A stretch of 33,000 nucleotides of DNA, taken from positions 5,208,001-5,241,000 of the forward strand of contig CM119372.1 of NCBI GenBank assembly GCA_051294905.1, given 5' to 3'. Positions 3,270-27,900 of the stretch are shown one piece after another. Numbering within the stretch: position 1 is the first letter of the stretch; every line of letters begins with the position of its first letter. A program made the translations under genes and the position numbers. Origin of the DNA: Botryllus schlosseri (Eukaryota). The notes beneath the pieces are model-generated. The model did not search any database. It was not told the DNA's origin and was given only the letters and a program-made list of their open reading frames with translations.

Positions 3270-6200
3270 ATGAGGATACTCAATAAATCCTCACTTCAAA
3301 CGTAAGTTCCTAATTACGCACCTTCTGCAGAATAACACCTATCTACCTTCGATTACATTTACAGCATCGTTACTTTTCTACTCGTTGGTTGTTCTTTTGG
3401 CCAAGACGATGAGCCATGCATGGATAACCCCGAAATGACATGGTGTGGCACTCAGAAAATGCATTGCAGTCTGCCATTCATGATGAAGAACTGTCGCAAG
3501 ACGTGCGAGATTTGTTCTACTGAGAATTCAACTGGTATTTACATCTCACCTACTTGATACAACTGCTCTCAAGCTTTACTGCCTTACGAAAATAATTCAC
3601 TTTCGAGGCAAACTCGTTTTAAAGTTCGACTGTATCGGGTAGGACCTATCGCAGATCTTACTCATTTTGGCTATGATGATAATTTAGAGTCGGATTCGGC
3701 AGTTTTAAATCAGTTCCATTATCGTTACTCCCGATCCGATGACTTTCACGCAGGCGCAAATGACATTTTTCCAATCCGTTTCCTTATCTTGCACAGATTG
3801 TAGATCTTTGAATTGTGACCACATTTGCTTCTCCTCGGAGGGCGATGCCCACAGGTGTATCTGTAGAGTTGGGTATGAGCTGCTGGAAGACGGGAGGACG
3901 TGTCGAGGTATGAATTACATTTAATACGAATGAAATGTAATTATATAAATATGAGATAAACGCGTTTGGAAAGAGCAGGCAAACCATCTGAGATGTCTAA
4001 CCATAGCTGAGCGTCATAGGCGCAGAGCAGTCAATTTGTAAGTGTCCTGTTTAATACTCTCGTGTCGCTTCGCCTGAGTGATTAATGATGTGTGGTTGTG
4101 CATAGGGGTCTTCAAAATTGACTTTTTTTAAAAATCGTACTGGCTATTTGATAAAATTGTTAGGTTACCTAATTTAAGCCTGCACGCCAAATTGGGTTCA
4201 ATTCCAACCAGTAGCCGCATTGCTACAGGAGAAGAAAGTTTCTATTTATTATATAAGAGCAAATAACCAAAAATTTGAAAATTTTCTGTTCACCCCATGA
4301 AAGTGTTGGGTTGTCTATAGAAACGATGTTCACCAAATTCGATTCAATTCCAACCAGTGGAAGCGGAGTTATTGCCGTCGAAAAATTTGGATTTAAATAA
4401 AATAGTATTTACGGTGGGCACCATTATAATAAATAACTAAAGAATTGGTCACCGTAAACACTATTTTATTCATAATCCAAATTTTTCGACGGCAAAATCT
4501 CCGTTTCCACTGGTTGGAATTGAACCAAATTTGGTGAACATCGTTTCTATGGACAACCTAACACTTTCATAGGGCGAACAGAAAATTTTCAAACTTTTTG
4601 TTATTTATTTTTATATAATAGAAACCATCTTTTCCTGTAGCAATGCGGCTACTGGTTGGAATTGAACCAAATTTGGTGTGTAGGCTTAAATTAGGTAACC
4701 TAACAATTTTATCAAGTAGCCAGTACCGTTTGAGAAAAAACTCATTTTTGATGACCCCTATTGTGCAATTATCCATCTAACGAGCCGTTAAATGGTTCAA
4801 ATAAGTATCAGTGCATTATGCGAATATAGTGATAATTTATTCAATCCGCACAACTGCCGGCAAGGTTGTGCTGATACATGCCCAACGAAATGTCAGGGAT
4901 GCCCGGTAAATATTGTGGGCGTGCGCCAGCAGCGTATGCCATGTACGGCGTAAGCTATGCCATGTAATTATAGTGGGTATGGGCATACCAAGAGTGTAGT
5001 GGGTTATTTTTAGTATACTACAGTACACTGTTGATATTGATTTAGAATAATATTCGTCACCATCTTAATTTAGCCTATTTTCATAAAAACAATATGGATT
5101 ATGAGCAAATTTGCCAGATTTTTAAAGTCAAAGTGCTGTCTCAAAATGGTGGCCTTTGGAAAATTAATCCAGTACCTATAAATATATATTCCTTTCCACT
5201 CCATAAATGATTGAAATAATCTGAGTCGTGTAATGGTAATCTACTAATGACATTTTACGATGTCCTTTGGTATATTATGGTTGCCCGACATATGAGCATG
5301 CGACACAATGGAAAACGACAGTTCAGCATGTAACACATCAGCATGCGTCACTTCAGCATGTGACTGTATAACCCAAAAACTTACCCTAACCCGAAACATA
5401 GCCTAACCTAACCTAACCTAGCCTAACCTAACCTAAGCCCTAACCCTAACCCAACCATAAACCTAACCTAACCTAGCCCTAACCCGTAATTTAACCCACA
5501 TGCTCATGTGTCGCATGTCAAATTGTCGCATGCCGAAGCGTCGCATGCTGTAATGTCGCATGCTCATATGTCCACGGACCGTATATTATAATTACACAAT
5601 TTATGAATCAAATTTGCCCCCGCAACATGGCTTACCGTTTCGGTAAATTATTTCTCAAACCATTACGAAAGGCGTGGCATTCACGCTCTTGCGCATAAAT
5701 TCGGAACAGAACCGGCCAACAAAAAGATTGAATCCTACCACCCTGCTTACAGCCGCGTTTGTTAAAACGCTTTCAATCATTATTGCATTGTAGATAAAGA
5801 TGAGTGCGAAACTGAATCGCCTTGTCCCGGAGAAAATTGCATCAATACGGAGGGATCGTATCGTTGCGAGGGAAAATGTGGATCGAATCAACTAGAATAC
5901 TACAAAGACACAGAATGCTGTGAAGTATCTAAAGGTGCATTACAATCCTTATTTTGCGAGGCCTATATTTACTATGCACAACCAGTTGTACCTTCTAGTA
6001 TGGACCGAACCCATCAATTCTCTACTGCACAGCCCATATCATTGCATACAGGCCTATATATGAGAATATAAGGGTACAAGCTGACTTCGTGACCTATAAT
6101 GGTCGTATTGCTGGACACCATTCCATCGGATTATTTCTCATATTTTTGAAATAAACTTCTGTCCAACTGTTTTCATCTACCAGCGTATAATAAACGTGGA

Positions 6201-9200
6201 TTTACTGCTGCTTTGGGTGCATTCTTCCCAAGTATGGAGTTTGGGTTGTTGGGCGTAGCGTAATCATGTGATTATTACACCGTGATAAGAAAAGTTGTAA
6301 TGACTGTTCAGTGTTCATGTGTAAAATGAACTAAATTCCCACCCGTAACGATGATACCGATCTATTTAGAAAGTTTCCATCGCGGTCCTTAACAGTTCTG
6401 GATACGAACAGAATGATTTACCGCAAATTAATAATTTCCAGGCGGTTCCTGCGGCATTAATTCTGAAAACGGTGGCCCAGAAGCCAGAGGAAAAAAGGCT
6501 ATAATCACCAGATGGCCGTGGATGGTGAGACCAAGACAACGACGCATTCATTTGTACACCATAACACATATACCTAAAAACACTTTCAGACTCTAATTGT
6601 AGTTGAATCGTCACATAAAGACTGCGCAGGGGTATTGGTCGATAGTTCCTGGGTTTTAGTAGCTGCTCATTGTGTTAGGTAAGAAACCGCGACACGACAT
6701 AAAGCAATGCATGATTGGTACTAACCTACGCATTTGTCAACAGAGGGGCGAGAACAGATGATGTGACGCTTTTGTTCGGGATCGCAGCAGACGATCTGCA
6801 CCATTCACTCAACGAGAACTTTCAAGAGCGGAATGCTGAAGCGGTAATGTATTAATCACTATAATAAAATCTGTAGACTCACTAGGGTTTACTGTCATGA
6901 CATTTTAGCCTATGCGTTAGCCCACTTCGTCAATGACAATAGCTCGTACTGTGAACACTGAACAGGTTACCAGCGTACTGTATATTGATTGAATGTCGGA
7001 GATAGTCAGACAGGAATTATCGGGAAGTTGGAGAGGTAGGCTTGACTGGACGAGCCTAAAAACGGTTACGCGTGCATGCAATACACTGACGGCTACGCGG
7101 TCACGACCAAAAAGGGTATAATCACATTATAGCTAAGTTCATATAGCGCAAAATTAAACGTCATGAGATCACACCCTATGAACTTGAGTCAGTCATGAAA
7201 TTCAAGTTTCTTCAATCGCTTCAGAGTCAATTATAATGGAAATTGGAAATGCTGTTGAATTGTAATCTTGTAATTCTCGCTGTGTCGAAGTTTCCATGAG
7301 ACTCATATGCCTATCCTCATATTCGATACCTTATATCTAAGTAAGCTACACCACTTTCCCAAACGATGATTGATTGTGCAAGCTTACCCTATTATCCAGC
7401 TTGATCACCACTCGCCTTAGTCACCAGTAGCAGATGCAGATTATAGCAGAGTTGCACTTCGGTGACATGAGATGACGTACAGCCGTGATCCCGCCAACCA
7501 CAATTATTACGCCATAATTACGTTTACTGTGTCCAAACTCCAAATGCAACAAAACTCGACTGGTAACGAGAGTACATTAATGATTATGATATATACCACT
7601 GTAATCACGCTTCGTTGGAACGATGTGGTGTTTCTTGCGTTTCAGATACACATCCACCCAAATTATCAACGTGAAGGTTATCGTCACAACGTTGCTCTAA
7701 TCAAGCTCAATAGAGACGTGGAGCTCACCAACTTCGTGCGACCTAATTGCTTGCCACACGGAGAGGAGCCAAATATCGATAAAAGATGTTGGGCGTTAGG
7801 TTATGCCAAATCACCAGGTACACGTTCATTAAAATTTGACACGGTATACAAGCAATGGCCAACTCATTTTGTATTGCATACTTTATTATCCTATCACAGA
7901 TAAAGTGTATCGTGGTGTTGTAAGAAAATAACTATTTAGGGTTTGGGAAATCCTAACTATTCTACACTATCCACTGTCGTTCGGCTTGCAGCCTTTGTAG
8001 TAGGGCCCTTGTGACAAACTCCTGAAGCAAAAACTCGAGAACTGCTGGGGAGCCACTGGCTTCACCTATTTTCGATGTGGAGCAACCAAAATTATATACA
8101 CCTGACGTACTTCGACATTCATTTCGATCAACGTCGAATATAGGTTTGGTCAAACTGTAGGCCTATCCACGACCTAAGCCACGGGACAATTATCCAACCT
8201 GCTCCTCGGCGTCTTAATAGGGCTACTCTGCAATCATGGACGGATGCCCCTACCCGTATTTCCAATACAATATAAAATTATTACCATAATCAATGCGAAA
8301 ATTACCACAGTCAGCAAGTTCCGTGACTCGCGACGAACTCTTCATGAGGAGACAGTGTACATTTCCGCACCGAAAGATTGTGGAGATATGGATAACGGAA
8401 TATGCATTTCCCACAAAACGCCTGGATCAGTGGGAGATTGCCAAGGTCAGACAAAGCCGCCAATGTATCAGAGATATAGCGAAAGAGTCATTTTATGTGA
8501 ATTTGAATCCAAAAAGTGTTTTAGAAACAGTATTCCGGTTTGGACTGCCAAGTTCAGATGTGGTCAGTAACTCCATTTTCGGAGAACTCTAGTACAGTAC
8601 TTGCTCAAGCATATTTGTTTTTATACTACTTCCACTTGCACTACTTAAAGGTTTTTGAAGCAAAACTAATAAACTTTTTACAACTTATATAGTTTTCGAG
8701 TGGGTTTGCATCACAACTATTAGAGAAATTAACGTAACAACATGAGTAAGTAGACCCTTTACCTCGTCAACTGGATATATTTTCCAAAAATCTGCTAATT
8801 TTAGTGACATTTGTCATTTTGAATCAGCCGCAAAGATATATTTTGCAATTTCGAAAAGAACACACACGCAATTGTCCACTGAAAGTAGCCTATGCTAAGC
8901 CAAAAATCTTCGTCCCTTATACAATATATATCAACTATATATTTATCGACTGCGAAATGTTGATTTTTAGGATCAACAGGTGGACCCTTGGTATGTCAAA
9001 GATGTTCATCGTGCGAGTGGTACGTGGCGGGATTGCGAACAACAGAAGGGCAGAGCTGCGCGTTTCGAAACGAATTAAAGTCTAATTTTACAAAATCGTC
9101 CGATTATGAAGTATGGATGAGGGAGACAATGGGATTGGCCGGCCTTCGATCTGCGATTGAGCCGTCATGTAAACCTCAAAGACGATGTAAGTTATGCAGC

Positions 9201-12200
9201 TATATCCGGGCATCAGAGCTCACAGTTACTCTGCGTCACAACCGTACCTAAGTCGTGTGGTCAACAAAGTGTTATGCGAAGGGGGGGGAGGGGATGTATA
9301 ACACCTAACACTATCAAAAATCCCACCAAGTATAACACCTATATCAATACGTCGCATGTTTAATTCCCGCCGATTACACATCGTCTTCTCTTTTAATTAT
9401 ATTTATATGTCCCGCCGTTCTTCAGTTGGCGTTTGGAATTCTTGGGGATCATGGAGTGCTTGTTCCGTTTCTTGCGGAAATGGTACATCGCATCGCACAC
9501 GTACCTGCAGAGGTGCTAAGCGGGGTACAATTGGTTGTTTGGGAGACAGCAAGTCTACCAGAATATGTCGACGGCGTTCTTGCAAGACCGGTGAGTGTAT
9601 AACTACATGTGTGTGTTATTGGCGATTGAGCTGTAATCCCGTGCATTTGCTCGCAATATCGAGTATTACTGCAATTAATGGTGAGCTCGTTTAATTGGAT
9701 TGAGCGCATAACATCGAGTGGTTTTTATGCCAGTTTTATGCGATTGGTATTCCGATATCACGTATCAAATGCAATTATTGAATTCGGAACCCTGGAAAAA
9801 TTCTGCGATAGAGATTGTCAAATTCCAACTACGTCGTAATTGGTCAAATGAATCACGGCAAAGTGATATTATTCATTCGCTAAATATCACGAAATGATAT
9901 AACATCTCAACCAACGGGTCGGATTTACCTTCCCATCTATTTACGACAAGCTATTGAAATGAGTTTAGTTGTTACTAAGCAATGAAATGTGATTCTTGAG
10001 GCGTAATCCGGCAATAATTCGGGTATGTGTTGAATGTCTGGTGCAATCTTTGCCCTCCGTTTAGAGATCGTAAAATTGAATTGAATCTTTCCACTGGTCC
10101 ATACACATGCTAAATCGATTATATTACTTATGATGTTATTCCTCGGCAATATATGCGTAGCGCCAGACGGCCTGCAGCTTGTTCAATATTCAGGTGTGTG
10201 GCTCCGAACCCGCCTACTAGAACTTGTACGTAGCATTCTTGTGTATCATTTTGTGATTGTTCAGCGCAACATACCATATTTCTTACGACATGCCTATCCG
10301 ATATGTTCATATTATGCACGTGCACGGGTGTTCTTAATTGACAGGAACTGATTTGACAAAGTATCAATTCGCTTGGTGACAGTGTTAATAGCCATATTCA
10401 GTGTAGTTAACCTCATGTAAGGGTGATGAGTAGAGCAGGTATGGTACAACGCGATAATGTCAATCGCGAGTATAGAATGCAAGTATCTGCATGTATCCTG
10501 CGGTTAACGTTCAGTCCTTAATGTTGCAGAAGAAACTAAGAATTCAGAATGGGGAGAATGGAGCCAGTGCAGCTCCACTTGCGGGAACGGAACCAGGCGA
10601 CGTTTTCGGTCATGTAAAGTCAGAGATTCAGGAAAACCTTGCCGAGGAAAGGACAAGGATGAAGAGGTATAGCAGGAATATTCAACTTTATGTCAAATTT
10701 TGAATATCAGTTAGAGGCTTTCCTTTTGCTTTCAGAAGTGTAATACCCGTCCTTGTCCGAAATGGAGTAGGTGGTCGCAGTGGGGGCCGTGCAGCGTAAC
10801 TTGCGGCCGAGGAAAAAGGGTATCGACTAGGGCGTGTGCGAATGGGGAATCGGGTCAGGCTGGATGCCGAGGCAGAGTGCAGAGAGCGCAAAACTGTCGA
10901 AAACGTAAGTCCCGAATGTTATAAAGCCAGTACCTCTACCTGGATTGAGGAAGAGATTGTTTGTTTTGGAAGGAAACTGTCCTGATTGGAGTAACTGGAG
11001 TTCGTGGTCGAGTTGCTCTGTTTCCTGCGGTGCGGGAGTTAGGTCGAGCGAAAGGAGATGTATATTTAGAAATTCCAAAGCGAGTGGGTGCCGTGGGAAT
11101 TCTACCAGGACCAAAATATGCAATGAAAAGGATTGCGAAGGTGATATTGCAAGATGAGAACAGCATAAGCATAAATAAGTAAATATATATATAAATTTCG
11201 CAATAGTTGCTTATCTAGCATATATTGTAAATCCAACAATATCACGTGCAGTTCAAAGACAATTTCATCATTCTTTGTTTTAATGAAATGATGAAAACAG
11301 AAAGCGGTCTATCGTCGCGAAAGACTTTCACTATCATAGCCGCGTGATCTCATCATAAATAAATCATCACTCTCCAGAGACTTGTGGCACTCCATACCAA
11401 ACACTTTCCTTGAGAAAACTTGCCCTTAAACCTTAATCCTTTGCATATTTCGGTTCAGATTGTAGCGAATGGTCGCCTTGGTCAGACTGCAGCGCATCAT
11501 GCGGCGACGGAACGCAGCAGAGATCCAGAAAGTGCTCGCGATTTTCACTTCAAGAAAAAACGAAAGAAAGGACCTGTCATTCTGGTGTTTGCCCCTTATT
11601 CTGGTCCGAATGGTCGGATTGGTCCGCATGCAGCGTAACCTGCGGCCGAGGCGAACGATCGAGAAGACGGCAATGTGACGGTGGCGATGACTCGAGATGC
11701 GAAGGTTCTTCGGTCGAAAGAGAACCGTGCGATAAGATCAAATGCCGAACACAAGAATGGAGTGACTGGGGCCCTTGGAGTCAGTGCGATACAAATTGTG
11801 GCAATGGATTGCAGACAAGAGAAAGGTTTGCTAGACTTTTGCAATTAATCATCGTAATACGATTTGCCCCTGAAATCCTCGCGTGTAAACACTGGACGAA
11901 TGCATATGGAGTCCTATATATCCCAAGCACTATACATAATTTTTATATCTTTGGTGATTCCATTTGTACGCATCTCCCAGAAAAGATACACTCACTTTCA
12001 GCATGACATATTCACCCCATTCTAAACAAATATGTGGGATCTAAATATTTTCTGCCTCTGATGGGATACATTATTAGCTCACAATAAAGACGTTTACTTC
12101 TGAATTCATGTGAGAAGACAAAACCTCAATGCATAAAATTTAAAGGAGATTATGAGATAGCAACTACATGCAATACCGTTAGGGTTGCATTCAAAACAAA

Positions 12201-13801
12201 CGGTGTTTTAAAACACTTTGTTTAAAACCTATTTTGAACAGTGTTTTAAACAAAGGCATTTAAAATTTATTTTTTATTTTTTCAAGTTGTAAAACTATGT
12301 CATAATTGTGTAAATACTTTCCAAAAACATGTTGTATGAGCCTACGGACAATTACCACCCGATATAGCCGACGTATATCGATACGCGAGGGTTGGAACCT
12401 TCAAAATAGTCGGTTCAACATTAATAGTAAAGATATTTCGTCAAAGGAGCTATATTTACCCTATATTTTCAATTGTCAATGTCAATCCACTATGACGTCA
12501 CAATTGAATATTCGTGACGTCATGGCTCAAAAAAACAATAAAAAACATGTTTAAAATTAGGACCTTGTTTTAAACTTGTTTGTTTTAAATTGATTTTTGT
12601 TTTAAATGCAACCATAAATACCGTTATGTTAAAATAATGTAACAGGCAATGCAGTCAAAGACGATGCCAAGGATCGGACCGAGAGCGGAGACTGTGCAGC
12701 GGCGGCAATTGTCGCGTAAACGGTAAGGACTCACACGCCAACGCTTCTACGATCACTTCCCTTTTATATGACTTTGACTTGCGCAACAGATAAGTGCTCG
12801 TCGTATAACGATAATTGGCCTTCTGTATACTGCCGCACCAACGTCAGAAATTGCCTGAGACAAGAGTTCGCCAATGTTTGCGCCGCCACGTGTTGCGGTG
12901 AGATTCGTAAGCAAGGTTCGTAAAATATTAATGTTTTCGGTCAATATAGCATGACATTTACACAGCACGTTTTTAGTGTACAGCGAATGGTCTTCTTGGG
13001 GTCGCTGTTCTGCTTCATGCGGTGGCGGATGGCACGAACGACAACGTAATTGCTTAGTGCGCCGATGGTGTCAATTCTTCGGAGAGCCCCTGCGAGAGGC
13101 TAGAGAATGTGGCCGTAGGAGCTGTTTTGCGAGAGGATCGGAACCGCTGTGTTCGGCGTCGTGTGGCGGCGGTCTGCGACAGCGCGCGTGCATCGAGAAC
13201 GAATGCAGTGCCGATCAACCGTTCGTTACCGAAGAATGCAACACGGAACCATGCCCGAACGTTATGTCCGAGTGGTCGGAATGGAGTGAATGCGCGGTGT
13301 CTTGCGGAAACGGAACGAAAAGTAGGACCAGAAACTGCACGGGAGAATTCTGCGGCGACGAAGTAACGCAGGAAAGCGCAGGGTGCAACGTTGGAGACTG
13401 CGGATTGTGGTCAGAATGGAAATATTCCGGTCAGTGTTCAGTAACCTGCGGGCTGGGCTCTATAACTAAAACAAGGTAAAGTATAGATCTTTTAATAGCA
13501 TTGATTTGCCGTGACGTTTGGGTATTCTTTGTGATCTAGAACTTGCGTGAAAGGAACATGCGAAGGTGAAAGCAAGCAAGAAGAGCTGTGCGTTGGTTCA
13601 GACTGTCCGACTGTCGGTGAGTTAGCGCGAATCGCCGTCCATATTGTGTAAGTCCTGACCAATTATTTTGTGTACGCAGAATCATACACCGTGTGTGAAG
13701 ATGGTCCGAGCATGCGGGATTATTGCCAGTTGTTGAAAGGCAATTGCAATAGCGGGTATATGGCATTCGCTTGTCCCAAAACCTGCGGGGCGTGTTCGTG
13801 A
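3270..13801 (+). CDS. Gene A: secreted multidomain protein, signal peptide-ShK-EGF-cbEGF-inactive trypsin-like domain-7xTSP1-ShK-like-4xTSP1-ShK (~1045 aa, 20 exons)
   Basis: Hand-built join(3270..3301,3365..3534,3797..3907,5794..5934,6442..6524,6590..6678,6744..6843,7646..7817,8311..8445,8971..9186,9426..9590,10530..10666,10736..10904,10973..11140,11459..11825,12646..12722,12790..12897,12977..13475,13540..13616,13680..13801). All introns are GT-AG and phase-compatible; total 3138 nt = 1045 aa + TGA. N-terminus MRILNKSSLQTIVTFLLVGCSFG-QDD looks like a signal peptide. An in-frame alternative acceptor for exon 12 exists at 10548. Confidence 0.88.
3365..3534 (+). other. Gene A exon 2: end of signal peptide plus N-terminal ShK (ShKT) domain
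   Basis: Encodes CMDNPEMTWCGTQKMHCSLPFMMKNCRKTCEIC, the six-Cys C-x-D...C...C...C-x-K-T-C-x-x-C pattern of ShKT. Confidence 0.85.
4103..4760. mobile_element. Foldback-type DNA transposon (658 bp, ~310-bp inverted arms, 7-bp TSD) in gene A intron 3
   Basis: Ends TAGGGGTC...GACCCCTA. The arms are reverse complements almost to the centre (short spacer ~4425-4445), and the element is flanked by TTGTGCA at 4096-4102 and 4761-4767. Confidence 0.85.
5287..5585. mobile_element. Probable non-autonomous element with 19-bp inverted repeats and a (CCTAA/CCCTAA)n core; HINE/Helentron-like or MITE
   Basis: GACATATGAGCATGCGACA (5287-5305) and its exact reverse complement (5554-5572) enclose GCATG-rich repeats and a telomere-like tract (~5385-5500). 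A short ACGG-A-CCGT hairpin follows. No clear TSD. Confidence 0.65.
6442..9186 (+). other. Gene A exons 5-10: chymotrypsin-fold (S1) serine protease homologue, predicted inactive
   Basis: Motifs in correct order: CG...WPWM, CAGVLVDSSWVLVAAHCV (His kept, 6668-6670), IHPNY...HNVALIKL (Asp to Asn, 7688-7690), VRPNCLP, CWALGY, CQGSTGGPLVC (Asp194 to Ser, Ser195 to Thr, 8973-8978). Confidence 0.85.
9426..12722 (+). other. Gene A exons 11-16: first TSP1 (TSR) array, 7 repeats
   Basis: Repeated W-x-x-W-x-x-W...C-S-x-(S/T)-C-G-x-G...R-x-R-x-C motifs, e.g. WNSWGSWSACSVSCGNG, WSRWSQWGPCSVTCGRG, WSEWSDWSACSVTCGRG. Confidence 0.9.
12180..12616. mobile_element. hAT-superfamily MITE (437 bp) in gene A intron 15
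   Basis: TIR TAGGGTTGCATTCAAAACAAA / TTTGTTTTAAATGCAACCATA; perfect 8-bp TSD AATACCGT (12172-12179, 12617-12624). Confidence 0.88.
12790..13801 (+). other. Gene A exons 17-20: ShK-like domain, 4 TSP1 repeats (one lacking the Trp ladder), terminal ShK
   Basis: 12790-12897 encodes CSSYNDNWPSVYCRTNVRNCLRQEFANVCAATCC. 12977-13616 encodes TSP1 repeats; the second, FARGSEPLCSASCGGG, has no WxxW. 13680-13801 encodes CEDGPSMRDYCQLLKGNCNSGYMAFACPKTCGACS*. Confidence 0.87.
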
Positions 13802-15063: not shown

Positions 15064-18000
15064 TTAACAGAGCCCGCACGATTTCTTGCAAAATCGCTTT
15101 CCGATCTCTCCCAAACAGTTGATACGATTCCTGTGACATGTCTTGTCGACGATATAATGATTTGCGCACGCTGTTGAACCTGCCAGTAGAGTTTGCGGTT
15201 TATAATCAGATTTGATACTACAATGAGCTTTGATGCTACAATAGTACATAGACACCCGATTTCGAAGGAGTATGTACTATAAATAGAACATAAGCTGTTT
15301 TTGATAGGAAATCGTTTTACCGATCTTCTGTAACACCATTAATTAACGAAACACCAATCATCCGACAGCTCAGCTTGTAGAGTAGATCGTGTTTCTGCAA
15401 GCTGAATGCAAACTCAAGCGATTACTTCAGGGACATCAGGCGGATATTTAGGCCGCTGGAAGCTGTCATACCTATTTCCCAGTCTGGGCTCATATTTAAC
15501 TATACTTTCGCTGTCGTCGGCCCCTACGCGCACCTGAAGAATGACACGGCTTCGCGATGCACTGCAGGTATTGAAGATTGTTGCCAACGCAGAGATTTGT
15601 GGAAATCGATGGAGATCCTCCGCATAACCTGAATCAAAGTCAATGTTGTCGTTGTTGTTGTCTGTGGTATTCATGGTGTTTTTCGACTACAATGGTCATT
15701 TACACCAGGCCGATATTCTTTATTATGACCCAAGGTCAACAGTCTTTTTTAAGACACCGCTTACGCGGATCATTTGGCGAGGAGGAGCCTACACAAACCT
15801 CCAACAATTTAAATGGTATTCTGGACTATACCTCGGTCGGACTCTAACCCGCAACCTATTGGCGTTGCAGATCTGGATCAATGTCGGATACGTTCAAACT
15901 GCGAAATTTGTCAAGTGTTATTTACCTTGAACGCGATCTCCTTCCTTTCCCGCAGGACCTATCGCACTGTGACCACTGAGACCAATTTGACCATTGATAA
16001 TATTGTCGACGTGCAGTGTGCGGTACCGTTGTTATATTCCTTGAACACGGTTGGTACTCATCATTCTCACCCACGCACCTATCTCCTCCGTAACATATCC
16101 TGGTTCGCATCTGGTAATTGCAGGTTGACCAGGAGGTCCACGAACCCCACGTGTCTTGGCACGGCGGTAAATGAGCACCGCAATGTGCTCTCTCGCGCGC
16201 GTTTCCAGTACACGGGACTTTGCTTTCGCACACCCTTAGACGACTGCGATAACCTTTTACTCCGCACGTTTTAGAGCAAGGGCCCCACGGCGACCACTGG
16301 GACCATTGCTGCGGGCAGTCTTTTATTTTACATCTTCTCGATTCTGTTTTAACTTTCATCACGGACGCTCCTCCGGAACGATATTGAGCTCCCTCGCCGC
16401 ACGACGCCGAGCATGATGACCAAACGCTCCACGGCACTATGGACCATGAAATTGTAAATATCAATTACGGTATACTGGTTGTCGGTGGTTAAAAGTCACG
16501 TTAGACAAGGAGATCAGTAACGCGGTATCTATACTTATTCGAAGTACTCCAGTAGATTTTGACTACTTCCAAACTCTGCTAAAGTGGTTGTGATGTTAGA
16601 CTTCTTCTACTTAACTGTTCGCAGTTTACAGTGGCCTAGAAGTATATACTTTTACTCGTACTTCAGGGGGATAGTGGAGGTACAGAACATTAGTATACCA
16701 TTGAATAATTTGTTCATATTGAAATATACTCGAATACTTTCGGTTGACACCTGTTGTAATTGTCAGCAATCAATGCAATGTTCTAAATCAGCGGTGCTTA
16801 ACCTTCTTTCCTCCAGCACCCCTTTCAAAAATTATCGGTCTCTAGCGCCCCCCATATTGTAAGGACTGTAATAAAGACAATGGGTAAGAGGGAGGGCCGT
16901 AACAGCACTTCGTCAGCCCCCCCTAAAACACAATTATCTTGCTCAACCATAGCGTGATAAACTAAATTTCTGAGGGCTTCGCCCTAGGCGCCAAAATTTT
17001 CTATAATGCATGAATGAATTGTTGTTAATGGCTTATATATGTCGCAATAAACTTTTTATCCTATCAGCCCACGTAATCAGATTATCAGTAGCGCTGAGTA
17101 AGCTGTTTCCTTGGAAAATGAAGGCCACGTAATTACTAATTAAACATATTCGAGCGTATGTCTTCGTGCATCGTGGCGTGGTAATGGCCGACCCCTAAAT
17201 ACCTATTTCTTTTTTTCTATAATTATGCATATTTTTTCGTGGGGGAGTCGTCAATACATGATGTGTAAGTTATGTTCATTCACCGAAATAATTTAGGGCA
17301 CCCTTCGAGCTGACCCCCCATCCGATTGGGGGTTTGGGTTGAAGCAGTTTCGGTCCAGGTAGTAGGTCAAAGCCCAGTCGGTCTTTTCGGGAAATATTTC
17401 GCGCTTTTCGCGCTCGAGGACCACTCGACTATAATAAACCATATAATAATTGTATGTGGTATATTCAGGGTCAAATCAAGGTTGTTATACCAACAATCGG
17501 GTACGGTCCCATACCCTGTGGTTCGAACCATCTCGAATTCACATCTCTGTGATTGGCAATACGGGGAAATTAATGGTATTGGATTTTGTTTTGGTGGTTT
17601 GTATGACGAAGTAAGTCAACTGAGAATGATATGCATACATCCACATATATCCATGTACAAGCGGCTATCGCCGTCAAAAGTGATATACAGTGCCTCGACC
17701 TACTTCGATTTACACACGCTTTGCGCTGCAGGATATAATATCTAGTTCGAAACATTTTGTTGAAAATAACCCTAGCAAGCGTGACGGCAGTGTTTTAACG
17801 GGAAATTGACGATCTAAAAGTACGCGCAATTCATTTTACATGAATTATAATAACCCACTACATTTATGAAAACATATGCAGTAAACATAGTCGCGTAGCG
17901 CGACCAGAAATTTCGAGATTTGGCATGTTTTTCGGAATGGTAATTTGCTCTGAATACTCATTAAGGATATGTCCGATCTACTAAATCATCTACTGCGAAG

Positions 18001-21000
18001 CCATTTTTCGCCAGCGCCCCCCATATCGCCCCCTTGATCCCAGCGCCCCCATATCGCCCCCTGGGCGTTTCCGCCCGTCTTCAAAATCGCCAGCGCCCCT
18101 TGGGGAGCGCTGGAGGCACGGTTAAAAACCACTGTTCTAAATTATCTATTGTTATTATTCACTGGTACTTGAGCAGAGAATCTCTTCGTTACTTCTACTT
18201 CTACTTGAGTACAAAAGTATGACTACTTTGACCACCTCTTCGCTATGGACTAACCTGGACATGACGACACAGCGCAACTCATTCGACGTCTTCGCTCTCC
18301 TTGGCACCCGACATCTCCGTACTTGCCGTTGACGCAAAACCGAAATGAATATTGCTCAGACAAATCGCAAGTTGATATGCAAGGAGTGTATTCGCCCCAT
18401 TGCGACCAATATGCGCAATCGCGATTGAAACAAGCCTAAGAAATTATCCGATAACAAGTGAAATTATTGATCAACGCGGGTTCCGTAGGCTACCGGGAGC
18501 TCTTACTCTGGATTCAGTTTTCGACCCCAGACAATTCCGCCGCGTGTTGTCGAGGCACTCTCTTTGACGAATTTGAGATCCGGGCAAACCACACACGGCG
18601 TTGCAAACTCCCCATTCATACCACGCTGTCCACCCAAGATTTGGCGGTGGGTCTAAAAGTGTTGCGTTATAGTCAGTAATGAGATAAGACATCTTCGGGA
18701 GTATCAGTCAGTATGCACAAAGTGCCAGTACAAATGTTTTCATAAGTATAGAATATAAATTATACAAACTGGCGCCCTTACAATATACAAAGCATAATTC
18801 AAGTAGAAACAATGTTTTGTCATTGTAGGGCGACCCGCAATGGAAACTTGTGAATATCTATAATAGTTCGAGGCAATTTTTGGTAATGCGATACCGTGAT
18901 TTTCAATAATTGCAAAAATAGTTGAAAGTATTTCGCAAAAGTGTTTCTTATACGTGAACGTATTCCGGTTTATATATATTATGACGATTGCGTATGAAAC
19001 TTGATGAGGCTTGCGTTGCAACGAATCGGTAGATTCCGATATAGATATCACGCCATTCTATTAGCTATTTTATGCATAGAACACCCACTCAAGCGTATAA
19101 CATACATCAGATGAAAACGCAACCGGGAATCGCTGAGGCAATGCATTTTGGCTTATCTGAACCGCAATCTGATGAGAACAAAAGTTGGATTATTAAAATT
19201 TCTGGCGTCCGTCTGCACGCTCTTTCCAGACAATATAATTGCATAGTGACATATCTCAAGATTTGCTAATTAACGGTTTAGGTCACAATGCACGCAAGCA
19301 CGCACGATATGCCCAGGTACTTTGAATTATTGCCAACGTTTCATTAATTAATCCGCATAAGCTTTTGTGTTAGTGTTATAAGTATCGATGGAAGAGTGCT
19401 CGTGAAATTCAAAAATAGGATGGTTTTGTTGAATTGTCTTGCCTTTTCTGAAAGTGCCTTCGAACTCTTTGTTACAGAAATTGATTGCATATCTCAGTCT
19501 TGCGTCTTTTCGTATCAACGCTTCCAGCCCGAATGGCCAGGTCGTGTTATACACAACAGATCCGTCAGTCAACTCGGTCTCGCCGATCAGTATATTGTTT
19601 TTGGACTCTGGTCGATTTTCTCCGAGCGGAAGCGGCGAATAATCACATATCCTAAATTAGCAAAATGAATGGCAATTATAATCCCAATACATGGGAGAAA
19701 GTTGCAGGCTTTCGCAATGTCTCTCACACGCAAAGTACATGCTGTCGTACGAAATCCACGACGTTCGTAATATCCAGCGAGGAATCTATTGGTGCCGTCG
19801 AGAATCCGAAACTTTGCGCCACCAAATATGGATCCGCTTCGTTATACTGGGCTTGCACACATTCCGTGTAAGTGTCTGTCGGTGCTGGAGTTGGCGGGTC
19901 AAAGGTTTTAACGACACGCTTATACTCAGCTGTAGGAGTAATGTATTTTAACCGACGAAACAGGTTTCATAAAAAGCTCTAACTGACTGATATCTTTTCT
20001 ATAGTCGGCCTCATACTTTTCCACGCATTGCTTAGCAGGTCCAATCAATGTGGAGGTGTTACGTAAATATACGTCAATGCATAGCTTCCAGCATTCGGCA
20101 TTGTCTTTTCCAGAAGATTCGCTGTAATAAAGTAGATGTGCCACCTAATCATTGCCCGACTTATGATAACAGTAATATTTTCTCCTTACGTGCATTCGAT
20201 CGTTCCAGAGTAGAAGAACCACAGCGTTTTCAAGATAGTAAAGTCGACCACGCTAGCCCAATCCCATATCTCTGGGACGGTATCGTAAAGACAATCTCGG
20301 AAATAACGCCGCAGTATCGTGTACTCCGTTTCAAACTGCTCGGCCTGTCGCTTTCGCCTACTCCTGCCAATTGAGTTCGTCGCGTTCGGCGACTACAAAG
20401 GGTTCAGTGGGAACAATTGAAATGTTATCGCCGGTGTACCGTATAATAGGATAGGTATATATACCGTTGTTGAGCTGTAGTCGTAATCCGAATAATCGTA
20501 CTCGTCAACTTCTTCGTCCGTATTTCCGCTGTCAGGAGTCTGGGTATGACCAGCGTGACATCCTGTGTATAAATTGCTTCCATCATAAAAGTGGAGGTAT
20601 GCTTAAACGGTCTGATATATATTCGGCATTGTTATAACAGGGGTCGCCAACTCAAAACGGGTCGCGGGCCACTTTTCAAATTTCGTAGAGGCCGCGGGCC
20701 CCAAGAATGCAATATGAGACAAAAATGCCACACAGTTTAGCGACCACATTTTTCAAAATTTAAGCCAGTACAGCGCTGTGCTCCCTGTCGTTGGCGACTG
20801 TCATAATAGGTACCACAAAAGAATGAATAGTTTAGAGAAGTAGCACAAGTACAACTAGAAATATCATGATAATCACTTTCGTTTTATTTTGAACTATGAG
20901 CTGCGCACGATACCTTGTCATCGACTAAGCACTAGGTAGCCAATATTGGGGCTGGCAAGACTCGTTACCGTAGCTGAAAGACTGTCTCCTAAAGCTTAAT

Positions 21001-22343
21001 CTTGTGGGAAAGCCCTAATCCGTTTTCTAAGCGTCTTGGTCTTGGCAGTGTCTGGATCATTGAACTTCAAGGCAATATGTTCAATTGTTCATTCGTACCG
21101 GCTGATTCCCCCTCCACGGCAGGCTGTCGGCAGCGTCTAAGCCGTTTGAGCTAGTGGGGAATAGTGGTGTTAGGCACAGGCGAATAGCTTATTTTGAAAC
21201 AACAACAACAACATTTTGATTCTGGAATAAATTTCAGCATTTCTAAATTCTTTGCTTATCGTTCTTCCGAAATCTCGAATCAGAGTACGGGCTGCAAAAT
21301 CTGACCTCGTGGGCCACGTGTTGGTGACCCATGTTATAAAAGATTGCGCAGCGGTCGTTAGCGCATCCCGACGAGCTATAAAATATTTTGAAAATAGCTA
21401 ATGGCTAAACGATCAAATCAATAGGGGAGTTGAACGGTGAATATATTAATCTTTTGACCCCCAAATGACCTATTTTACGAATAAATGTAATACAATCATA
21501 AAAGGTGTAAAGTACTGACTGATAAATCTTAACATCCGTGTATCGGCGGAAATGATTATTGGGATATGTTTATTGATGGTTCTATAGTCGATATGGTGCT
21601 TAGAAGTCAACATAACGTTGTGATGTTTGGTGTCGCACATCTGAAAATATATCCGGTTATACTGTGGATTCATCATATTAACCATAGAGATTAAAGAGCT
21701 ACATTTGTGGATGATCACCATTTTAAATCCGATTTTACAAGAATTGGTTAACTACATCCTTGCAAAAATGGAAATCCATGCATTAAACATTATCATACCG
21801 AGTACGCTACTTTTCGTATGGGATTATTTCTAAGAACAAGTATAAAATGCTATTCTATGTGGAAGCGATAGCTCACACCGTTATATCATGTTGCATTTGT
21901 TATGAGATATCGGTGCGTGCACGGTACGGAACGAATATAATTACAATGCTCATCCGACGCATGGTTGATAAATTAAGGGGTGAAATCGATATCAAACCGG
22001 TAAGACTACAAGACTGTGAGATAATTTATTCAATTTATCTTGTGCGATATTTATGAGATGCCGATGCTGCATAGCACAAGATGATCTTTGTTCGCTAAAA
22101 TATTTTCATTATTTAATTAATGCATCTAATATTTACAACGGTAGAAATGTTTTCTCAAATGTTCAAATCTCGTAATTCGTGCCATACTACTCCTGACTCC
22201 CGATCTCAGGCTTCCAGTAAAACTCTATGAGAGCACAATAATAACCTAAACTTTAGAGCAACTGTATACGACTTACCTTCTACCAGTACAGAGTTTTGTG
22301 TAGTCCATAAAAAGCATACAAACAAAAATAAGATACGATGCAT
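15064..22343 (-). CDS. Gene B: secreted protein, signal peptide-acidic pro-segment-furin site-unrecognised Cys-rich domain-6xTSP1-ShK (~638 aa, 11 exons)
   Basis: Hand-built complement(join(15064..15179,15534..15628,15926..16436,18255..18435,18507..18652,19443..19651,19728..19884,19988..20121,20190..20392,20465..20562,22277..22343)). Total 1917 nt = 638 aa + TAA, all phases compatible. Exon 1 MHRILFLFVCFLWTTQNSVLVEG ends at a strong AAG/GTAAGT donor. The link between exon 6 and exon 7 needs a GC donor (AAG/GCAAGA at 19442) and is the least certain junction. Confidence 0.75.
16789..18134. mobile_element. Non-autonomous hAT (Charlie/Buster-like) element, 1346 bp, in gene B intron 8
   Basis: Ends CAGCGGTGCTTAACC / GGTTAAAAACCACTG, perfect 8-bp TSD TTCTAAAT (16781-16788, 18135-18142), and GCGCCCCC(ATAT) subterminal repeats. 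No transposase ORF seen. Confidence 0.82.
18160..18239. repeat. Fragment of a TACTTGAGTA-rich dispersed repeat (MITE end), copy 1
   Basis: Shares CTACTTCTACTTGAGTA units and the terminus GACTACTTTGACCACCTCT with 26862-27025; a degraded similar end occurs near 16545-16578. Confidence 0.65.
19443..20347 (-). other. Gene B unrecognised Cys-rich domain (~219 aa) after the RRKR site
   Basis: Four phase-compatible exons joined by 68-103 nt introns give a stop-free protein (QAEQFETEYTILRRYFRDCLYDTVPEIWDWASVVDF...AINFCNKEFEGTFRK) with 9 Cys. I recognise no family motif. Confidence 0.72.
20638..21333. mobile_element. hAT (Charlie/Buster-like) MITE (~696 bp) in gene B intron 1
   Basis: Ends CAGGGGTCGCCAAC / GTTGGTGACCCATG, GCGGGCC subterminal motifs, and flanking direct repeat (TG)TTATAA at 20630-20637 and 21332-21339. 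Confidence 0.75.
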
Positions 22344-23940: not shown

Positions 23941-24035
23941 TTCAATACACCACAAAAATGCGATACAATGAAAAGATAGGAAGGTGTCGAAACGACTTGG
24001 AATAGTCTTTGGAATCAGACACCCACCTTGGCCTA
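23941..24035 (-). mobile_element. 3' UTR fragment of CR1/L2-type retroelement, copy 1
   Basis: TTCAATACACCACAAAAATGCGATACAATGAAAAG...GGAATCAGACACCCACCTTGGCCTA is nearly identical to 25276-25371 and similar to 27770-27845. Confidence 0.6.
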
Positions 24036-24181
24036 TGCCAGTGGTCGGGAGCCTTTTTCGGCCAAAGAGCCTTATTGGCCCAATATTTTCAATTGTAACG
24101 AAAGAGCCATACATGTTAATCAACTGTTACGTCACAATTGAACATGCGTGGTGTACTGGTAATTTGGTAGCACTAATATGT

Positions 24182-25231: not shown

Positions 25232-25640
25232 CATCATCATCATCATCATCATTGGTTTATTAGCAATTTCATCAGTTCAATACACCACAAAAAATGCGAT
25301 ACAATGAAAAGACAAGAAGATGTCGAAGCGACTAGGAGTAGTCTATGGAATCAGACACCCACCTTGGCCTAGGCGATGTAAAGAGGAGGCATGCACACTG
25401 AATGAAAGTAAAGAAGATAGTATAGAAAAAAGTGACAAGAAATAGGGCGGCATGTCATGGGAAGCGAGATCGATAGGTCAGTGGTGGTCCGGTAATCTTG
25501 AGGATGGACTGTATTTATTTAGTAGTAATTGCGTGTAGTACATACCCAGCACCCACCGTGTGATACGTCAGTGAGGGGAGGCAAGTTAGACAGTGCCTCG
25601 GATGTCGTCAGGGATGAGTGAACGAAAATTCTGAACCCTT
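25232..25640 (-). mobile_element. 5'-truncated CR1/L2-type LINE 3' end, copy 2, with microsatellite tail
   Basis: The minus strand ends AATAAA-CCAA-(TGA)n at 25232-25260 and shares the 3' UTR with the two other copies. Decayed codons near 25560-25630 read SLIPDDIRGTV*LAS, reminiscent of the WNSLPxxIR ORF2 C-terminus (inference). Confidence 0.62.
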
Positions 25641-26861: not shown

Positions 26862-27025
26862 ACTTACTTACTTGAGTAGATTTAATGTCGGTCAATTCTA
26901 CTTCTACTTCAAGTAGTTTTAGGTTGCTTGTGGAAGAAATACTTCTACTCGTACTTGAGTAGATTTTTTCGTCGCTACTTCTGCTTCTACTTGAGTAGCT
27001 TTCTTGACTACTTTGACCACCTCTG
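26862..27025. repeat. TACTTGAGTA-rich dispersed repeat (MITE end), copy 2
   Basis: Multiple TACTT(G/C)AGTA units ending GACTACTTTGACCACCTCTG; same family as 18160-18239. The other end was not found. Confidence 0.65.
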
Positions 27026-27710
27026 CTATTCAGACTGCCGCGGACATTAACGACCTGCCGATCCTCAAATCGCGGCCGGCAAGCTGAGGTGTCTGATTAC
27101 ATTGAAATCGACGAAATTTTCATACATGGCATTATCCATTAAAACATTTAGTATAATGGAGTCGAAGACTAATTTTAGTGTGCAAATCCGGGAATGAAAA
27201 GCACTGGATTTTAAGATATTCGGAAGACGCATTCCAAATTATTGATTCAAATATAAATGATCAATATAGTTATATCATAGCCTTAATAAAGTCTATGGTT
27301 ATATTGTTAAGCTCGCGGACTCATTTTGGAGCTTATATTCGGATCAAGAAAGAGCGGGCTTGACCTTGACTTCCCACATTAGCAAAATGGCTACACCGTG
27401 GATAATGTACTCCGGCAATATTTTGTGAAGCCACCAGATATTCTTTTCGCCGCGGGTCAATGCATTTTGACCTCCCTACCTACAAGGACTTTTCTGTACT
27501 GGATTACTGGTGTGATTAGCGAATACTGAGGCTGAGCTGATAACGTGATAAGGTAACCGGGTTGTATACTATAGTGAGACCGCGGACAGTATTGCTGACT
27601 GCGGAGACAGGAACTCGCGGTATTATTGTACTTGTTTCTCTTCTCATTGCCGTCATAATATTCGTTATGATGTTACAGTTGCATCAATATTCAGAAAGTC
27701 TTATAGTTAT

Positions 27711-27900
27711 ATCAATCATCAATCAATCATTATTATTAATATTTTCATCGTTTCTAAACTTCACAAGACTGCGATACAATGAAAAGATAGGAAGGTGTCG
27801 AAACAACTTCGGAGTAGCCTTTAAGATCAGACACCCACCTTGCTTGCCTTATAGGCGAAGTAAATAAGAGGCATGCACACTGAATGAAACTGAAAAGTAA
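27711..27900 (-). mobile_element. 3' end of CR1/L2-type retroelement, copy 3
   Basis: GCGATACAATGAAAAGATAGGAAGGTGTCGAAAC...GATCAGACACCCACCTTG...GAGGCATGCACACTGAATGAAA is shared with copies 1-2; an (ATCA)n/(ATT)n tail lies at 27711-27740. Confidence 0.6.

Follow-up and report, generated by a model that had tools for sequence, protein, structure and literature searches.

Proteins of the thrombospondin type-1 repeat (TSR) superfamily derive their specificity from their heads. In the ADAMTS proteins, a furin site is located directly ahead of the head. The Tast proteins of ascidians combine astacin with TSRs, and protease-headed TSR proteins act in ascidian fertilisation (PMC11673157). A gene of the same design, termed gene B, is encoded on the minus strand of a 33,000-nucleotide (nt) stretch of Botryllus schlosseri DNA (contig CM119372.1, positions 5,208,001 to 5,241,000), hereafter the window, which has the character of eukaryotic DNA with a GC content of about 40% and short introns. 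Tast, ADAMTS and the neighbouring gene A, a serine protease gene, share with gene B a signal peptide, a pro-segment, a head and a TSR string. Their heads are, however, recognisable proteases, whereas the head of gene B has no match to a protease family. The architecture is of a known type, that of the TSR superfamily with its variable heads, and the unrecognised head is its new part.

The interpretation favoured here, with a probability of about 60%, is that gene B codes for a furin-processed matrix protein carrying a non-catalytic binding head, which is restricted to stolidobranch ascidians, probably consists of two parts and is possibly disulfide-tethered to the propeptide. Gene B comprises 11 exons, and the reading frame across this model runs for 653 amino acids (aa) without interruption. 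The product contains, in this order, a signal peptide, the motif GCHAGH, an acidic pro-segment, the site RRKR, the head, six or seven TSRs and a ShK-like tail. The head is encoded by four coding exons (3–6) of this intact gene, at window positions 20347-19443 on the minus strand, and its first residue is Gln71, right after RSRRKR. The exons of gene B are the following:

22277..22343, minus strand: exon 1, start codon and signal peptide (MHRILFLFVCFLWTTQNSVLVE-G), from sequence reading and the gene model
20465..20562, minus strand: exon 2, GCHAGH (Cys24) followed by the acidic, Tyr-rich DEEVDEYDYSDYDY, from sequence reading and the gene model
20348..20392, minus strand: 5' part of exon 3, with a NAT sequon and, closing the pro-segment, the dibasic furin-type site RSRRKR
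20190..20347, minus strand: remainder of exon 3, with which the head begins, from QAEQFETEY... to ...TIEC-T, including TILKTLWFFYSG
19988..20121, minus strand: exon 4, CWKLC (CxxxC), a conserved NTS sequon and the QCVEKYEAD motif
19728..19929, minus strand: exon 5 in its long form, basic Pro-rich linker TEYKRVVKTFDPPTPAP, followed by the first part of the C-terminal half, to ...HVLC-V
19443..19651, minus strand: exon 6, CVIC (CxxC), DGSVVY and TWPFGLEALIRKDARLRYAINFC...TFRK, with a GC donor at its end
18507..18652, minus strand: exon 7, TSR 1, Pfam TSP_1 E = 1e-05, over the gathering score
18255..18435, minus strand: exon 8, TSR 2, Pfam TSP_1 E = 8e-04, slightly below the cut-off, 68% identity to the orthologue in Styela clava
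15926..16436, minus strand: exon 9, four TSRs, Pfam TSP_1 E = 3.7e-21 in four stretches
15534..15628, minus strand: exon 10, end of the last TSR, the model being collinear with Styela
15064..15179, minus strand: exon 11, six-Cys ShK-like C-terminal motif and stop codon

Gene B has at least one Pfam TSP_1 match above the gathering score, the mark of the TSR superfamily, and its Styela orthologue matches the same model with E = 4.8e-22. For the tail encoded by exon 11, ShK was the only Pfam match; it covers the full model span (2-37/37) at a sub-threshold 13.9 bits (E = 0.081), and the Styela tail reached 10.1 bits (E = 1.2) against a cut-off of 20.9 bits. Since the signal peptide, the sole Kyte-Doolittle hydrophobic peak of the protein, is its only strongly hydrophobic segment, the gene B product is a soluble, secreted, modular extracellular protein of the ascidian.

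A phmmer search with exon 6 alone against 1.84 billion representative proteins returned one true match (E = 4.9e-19, 65% identity), the Styela clava protein XP_039268385 (LOC120343310, 652 aa). This protein is listed as uncharacterized and formerly carried an automatically assigned name, 'SCO-spondin-like isoform X1'. Searched back onto the window by tblastn, it matched the head exons with E = 2.8e-49, and these two values exclude chance similarity. The former name reflects TSR similarity alone, since the TSRs are all that SCO-spondin has in common with the Styela protein and gene B, in which the searches revealed no EMI, vWD, LDLa or CTCK modules. A literature search for LOC120343310 found no paper mentioning this locus.

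The 653-aa and 652-aa products are collinear from end to end, with their parts in the same order. Common to both are GCHAGH, the furin-type site, ten Cys ahead of the TSRs, the NTS sequon, the number of TSRs, the ShK-like tail and the intron positions in the head, where all three introns coincide in codon position and phase. The pro-segments are alike in charge but different in sequence, that of Styela containing a poly-Asp run of about ten Asp and that of gene B being rich in Asp, Glu and Tyr. Styela also lacks the intron that in gene B separates the acidic stretch from the furin site.

The head is the slowest-evolving and best-conserved part of the gene B protein. Identity to Styela amounts to 54% in the head, 48% in the TSR and ShK part and 32% in the pro-segment, and the proportion of non-synonymous differences (pN) rises from 0.30 in the head to 0.38 in the TSRs, 0.45 in the linker inside the head and 0.51 in the pro-segment. 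Synonymous sites are saturated (proportion of synonymous differences, pS, 0.79–0.89), which indicates a large distance between the two species. Among 12-residue blocks, TILKTLWFFYSG is the most conserved, with 92% identity. The head is acidic (isoelectric point about 4.7) and carries one conserved N-glycan sequon (NTS) and nine Cys, including the CxxxC (CWKLC) and CxxC (CVIC) pairs reported in the first-pass annotation; all nine are conserved in Styela, as is Cys24. By this comparison, the head is a genuine, selectively constrained protein region, and its standing as the most constrained part fits the earlier description of it as the functional head.

The furin-type site is also kept at the aligned position, as RRKR in the window and RSKR in Styela. 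The location of the head region, N-terminal to the recognisable modules and with this site nearby, would fit a large pro-domain, a spacer or an intramolecular chaperone, with the activity residing in the TSR/ShK part of the protein. Such a role is improbable, since the furin-type site lies upstream of the head and not downstream, so that the head remains on the mature chain, and since the head is the most conserved region, while spacers and pro-segments of the same protein evolve much faster.

The four peptides quoted in the first-pass annotation occur exactly on the minus strand, at 20347-20192, 20117-19989, 19882-19730 and 19650-19444. The junctions of gene B have canonical AG acceptors and GT donors throughout, the one exception being the GC donor that follows exon 6 (19442-19443, minus strand; AAAG/gcaaga), which makes this a GC-AG intron. 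Styela has an ordinary GT past the FRK codons, and its location at the identical codon phase supports the GC donor of the window. Two in-frame acceptors are available for exon 5, one at 19929 (ctcctacag/CT) and the other 45 nt downstream, at about 19884. The Styela linker (…GKKTYTIKRPAKTKVTPRPPSDNYERC) aligns with the longer form of the window (…TEYKRVVKTFDPPTPAPTDTYTEC), and because this form is collinear the acceptor is placed at 19929. The Styela-backed acceptor adds 15 aa, so that the head, previously estimated at about 220 aa, comprises 234 aa (residues 71–304). The downstream acceptor may serve as an alternative 3' splice site, its use shortening the linker by 15 residues. The non-canonical donor, the alternative in-frame acceptor and a model built without transcript data would also be compatible with a gene-model artefact or a pseudogene, whose exons are spliced otherwise or no longer expressed; this is very improbable in view of the intact 653-aa open reading frame (ORF), the collinearity with the RefSeq model, with common intron positions and phases, and a level of non-synonymous change far under the synonymous one.

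Relatives of the head were sought with single exons and with residues 74–312 of the Styela protein as a proxy for the head, in collections that exclude the window's own protein and to which most tunicate genomes probably contribute no proteins. In Pfam, the head exons, taken one by one, gave either no match or one of 14 bits (cut-off 27), while the Styela head gave only a chance match of 17.7 bits over 25 residues to the BAHCC1 Tudor domain (cut-off 28). No match for the head was obtained in NCBIfam, or among PDB sequences with phmmer and a two-species profile. Three queries of the ESM Atlas gave best scores of 0.54–0.69, at noise level with respect to a lead threshold of 0.9; the top matches (rotavirus VP7, MCR alpha and a GH36 N-terminal domain, scores of at most 0.69) were dismissed as noise. 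From 5.8 billion proteins, word-index searches recovered the Styela protein only, whether the query was the whole protein, the head by itself or the N-terminal 100 residues. A second HMMER match (E = 1e-3), to a bacterial-type tandem-repeat protein, was confined to four short stretches and is spurious. No relative of the head was found in JGI metagenome contigs, 185,579 prokaryote genomes and IMG/VR, and because these contig scans were empty a bacterial, viral or horizontal origin is not indicated.

In the collections searched, the head is a lineage-restricted domain, as judged by its sequence, with no detectable relative outside Styela clava. This agrees with its initial assignment as a lineage-restricted or undescribed domain, since no curated family, PDB sequence or Atlas entry matches it and its only relative is the Styela orthologue. 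A confident match to a known family, which would have refuted that assignment, was returned by neither Pfam nor NCBIfam.

Signatures of known activities were likewise not found in the head. A metzincin or ADAMTS-type protease head was rejected, as there was no match to a reprolysin, astacin or MMP model of Pfam at E <= 1 and no HExxH in the window or Styela head. No Ser-His-Asp signature or protease family match is present in the head. In SEA domains, the autoproteolysis motif G/SVVV is located in a beta-turn of a ferredoxin-like fold. A SEA domain was considered for DGSVVY of exon 6 (19560-19577, minus strand; GSVTY in Styela) and set aside as a probable coincidence, with no Pfam SEA match at E <= 1 for either exon 6 or the Styela head.

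Such results bear on a further possibility, a tentative one, that the head belongs to a known fold but has diverged very far; it could be, for instance, a degenerate enzyme or a helical extracellular module stapled by disulfides. The saturation of synonymous sites, an identity of only 48% even in the TSRs, a profile built from two sequences, the failure of AlphaFold2 and the fast protein evolution of ascidians would all help to hide such a relationship. On the other side, searches of Pfam, NCBIfam and PDB at E values of 1–10 gave just short chance stretches, neither HExxH nor another catalytic signature is present, and the GSVVY string has no Pfam SEA support.

For the favoured lineage-restricted binding head, processing would begin with signal peptidase, which by the -3/-1 rule cuts most plausibly after VEG (AQG in Styela), exposing Cys-His-Ala-Gly-His. 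A furin-type convertase would then cut the conserved R-x-K/R-R in the secretory pathway, so that the long chain would start at Gln71. Identity to Styela is 67% in the GCHAGH block and 17–25% in the remaining pro-segment. Both species have 1 + 9 = 10 Cys ahead of the TSRs and 38 after, so that the simplest pairing is a link between Cys24 and the odd Cys of the head, probably in its 5-Cys N-terminal half; the acidic peptide would thereby stay attached. Such a bond had been proposed in the first-pass annotation, and it gains indirect support from the conservation of Cys24 and GCHAGH amid a diverged pro-segment and from Cys parity, which is parity and not proof. The acidic stretch DEEVDEYDYSDYDY (20465-20540, minus strand) looks like tyrosine-sulfation sites.

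The head may serve as a recognition or adhesion module that makes the TSR stalk specific, whether in the extracellular matrix or at the cell surface, as do other heads of the TSR superfamily. It is read as a specificity-giving binding module because no protease or other enzyme signature is present, and by analogy with these proteins we infer that it is a non-catalytic recognition or adhesion module.

The head also contains a conserved H-x2-C-x2-C (HVLCVIC), to which a more elaborate and unlikely scheme can be attached. The head would be a new, ascidian-born fold, and the propeptide, its N-terminal Cys exposed by signal peptidase, would use Cys-His-x-x-His to latch HVLCVIC through a disulfide or a shared metal. 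This cysteine-switch-like latch would be loosened by the cut at RRKR, unmasking a function in binding or in redox chemistry. Compared with a binding module, a metal or redox site is the less likely reading.

Within the predicted binding head, two sub-modules are suggested, the N-terminal one mostly helical with 5 Cys and the C-terminal one alpha+beta with 4 Cys, joined by the fast-evolving Pro/Lys-rich linker. This layout is proposed because the linker is poorly conserved and is unstructured in the low-confidence models, which contain, as weak hints, long helices in head residues 1–95 and, after the linker, a mix of helices and hairpins. An internal duplication of the head (W-x8-R-x10-C-x2-E in both halves) is not established, since its score was reached in 2 of 500 shuffles for gene B and in 137 of 500 for Styela.

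Several points weigh against the interpretation of gene B as a furin-processed protein with a two-part, stolidobranch-restricted head. The restriction to two species reflects sampling, with many tunicate genomes having no proteins in the collections. The exhaustive HMMER search was performed with exon 6 only, and the N-terminal half was searched via a 5-mer word index, which is prone to missing distant relatives. AlphaFold2, supplied with an alignment of Styela and the window exons, gave mean predicted local distance difference test (pLDDT) scores of 40.3 (whole head) and 40.2 (C-terminal half), and at pLDDT values of about 40 both the helical content and the split into two modules are unreliable. 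Furin cleavage and the Cys24 disulfide are read from motif conservation and Cys parity only. The splice sites of the window, including the GC donor and the exon-5 acceptor, rest on sequence comparison and not on transcripts.

With the head of gene B, the closest invertebrate relatives of vertebrates provide a concrete, clonable extracellular domain that is taxon-restricted. Its structure and ligand would tell a new fold from a diverged old one and would reveal its role, be it in the matrix, the tunic or the gametes of ascidians. The stakes are moderate, as orphan domains are common in fast-evolving tunicates and the orthologue is already present, uncharacterised, in RefSeq.

Gene A, located on the plus strand at about 3336-13800 and convergent with gene B, is a large modular serine protease gene with the following features:

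3336-3554, plus strand: ShK-like module, Pfam 17.0 bits, cut-off 20.9
6578-6679 and 7640-7900, plus strand: calcium-binding EGF and trypsin pieces, Pfam, above the cut-offs
about 9356-13476, plus strand: ORFs with at least eight TSRs
13652-13798, plus strand: ShK-like module, Pfam 19.0 bits, cut-off 20.9

The head of gene B was earlier said to occupy the position at which gene A has a protease fold. The analogy is loose; gene A does contain a trypsin domain, but ShK and EGF modules precede it. Within 10 kb of the Styela orthologue, a gene A-like protease gene was looked for and not found, so that the pairing of genes A and B is not shown to be conserved. An extra ShK-like Cys pattern was noticed in gene A at 12720-12920, by eye only.

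Repeats are present in and around both genes. An intron of gene A contains an interstitial telomere-like array of about 15 CCTAA/CCCTAA units (5369-5484), flanked by a 76-nt inverted repeat (5287-5362 / 5497-5572). A foldback in a gene A intron (4102-4761), with inverted arms of 145–159 nt and 88–90% complementarity, is probably a miniature inverted-repeat transposable element or a foldback transposon remnant. Dispersed repeat fragments with 61–91% identity are found in intron 8 of gene B and in the region upstream of this gene, and are likely remnants of interspersed elements:

18161-18262 and 26864-27047: dispersed repeat fragments
23954-24038, 25290-25412 and 27765-27894: further dispersed repeat fragments
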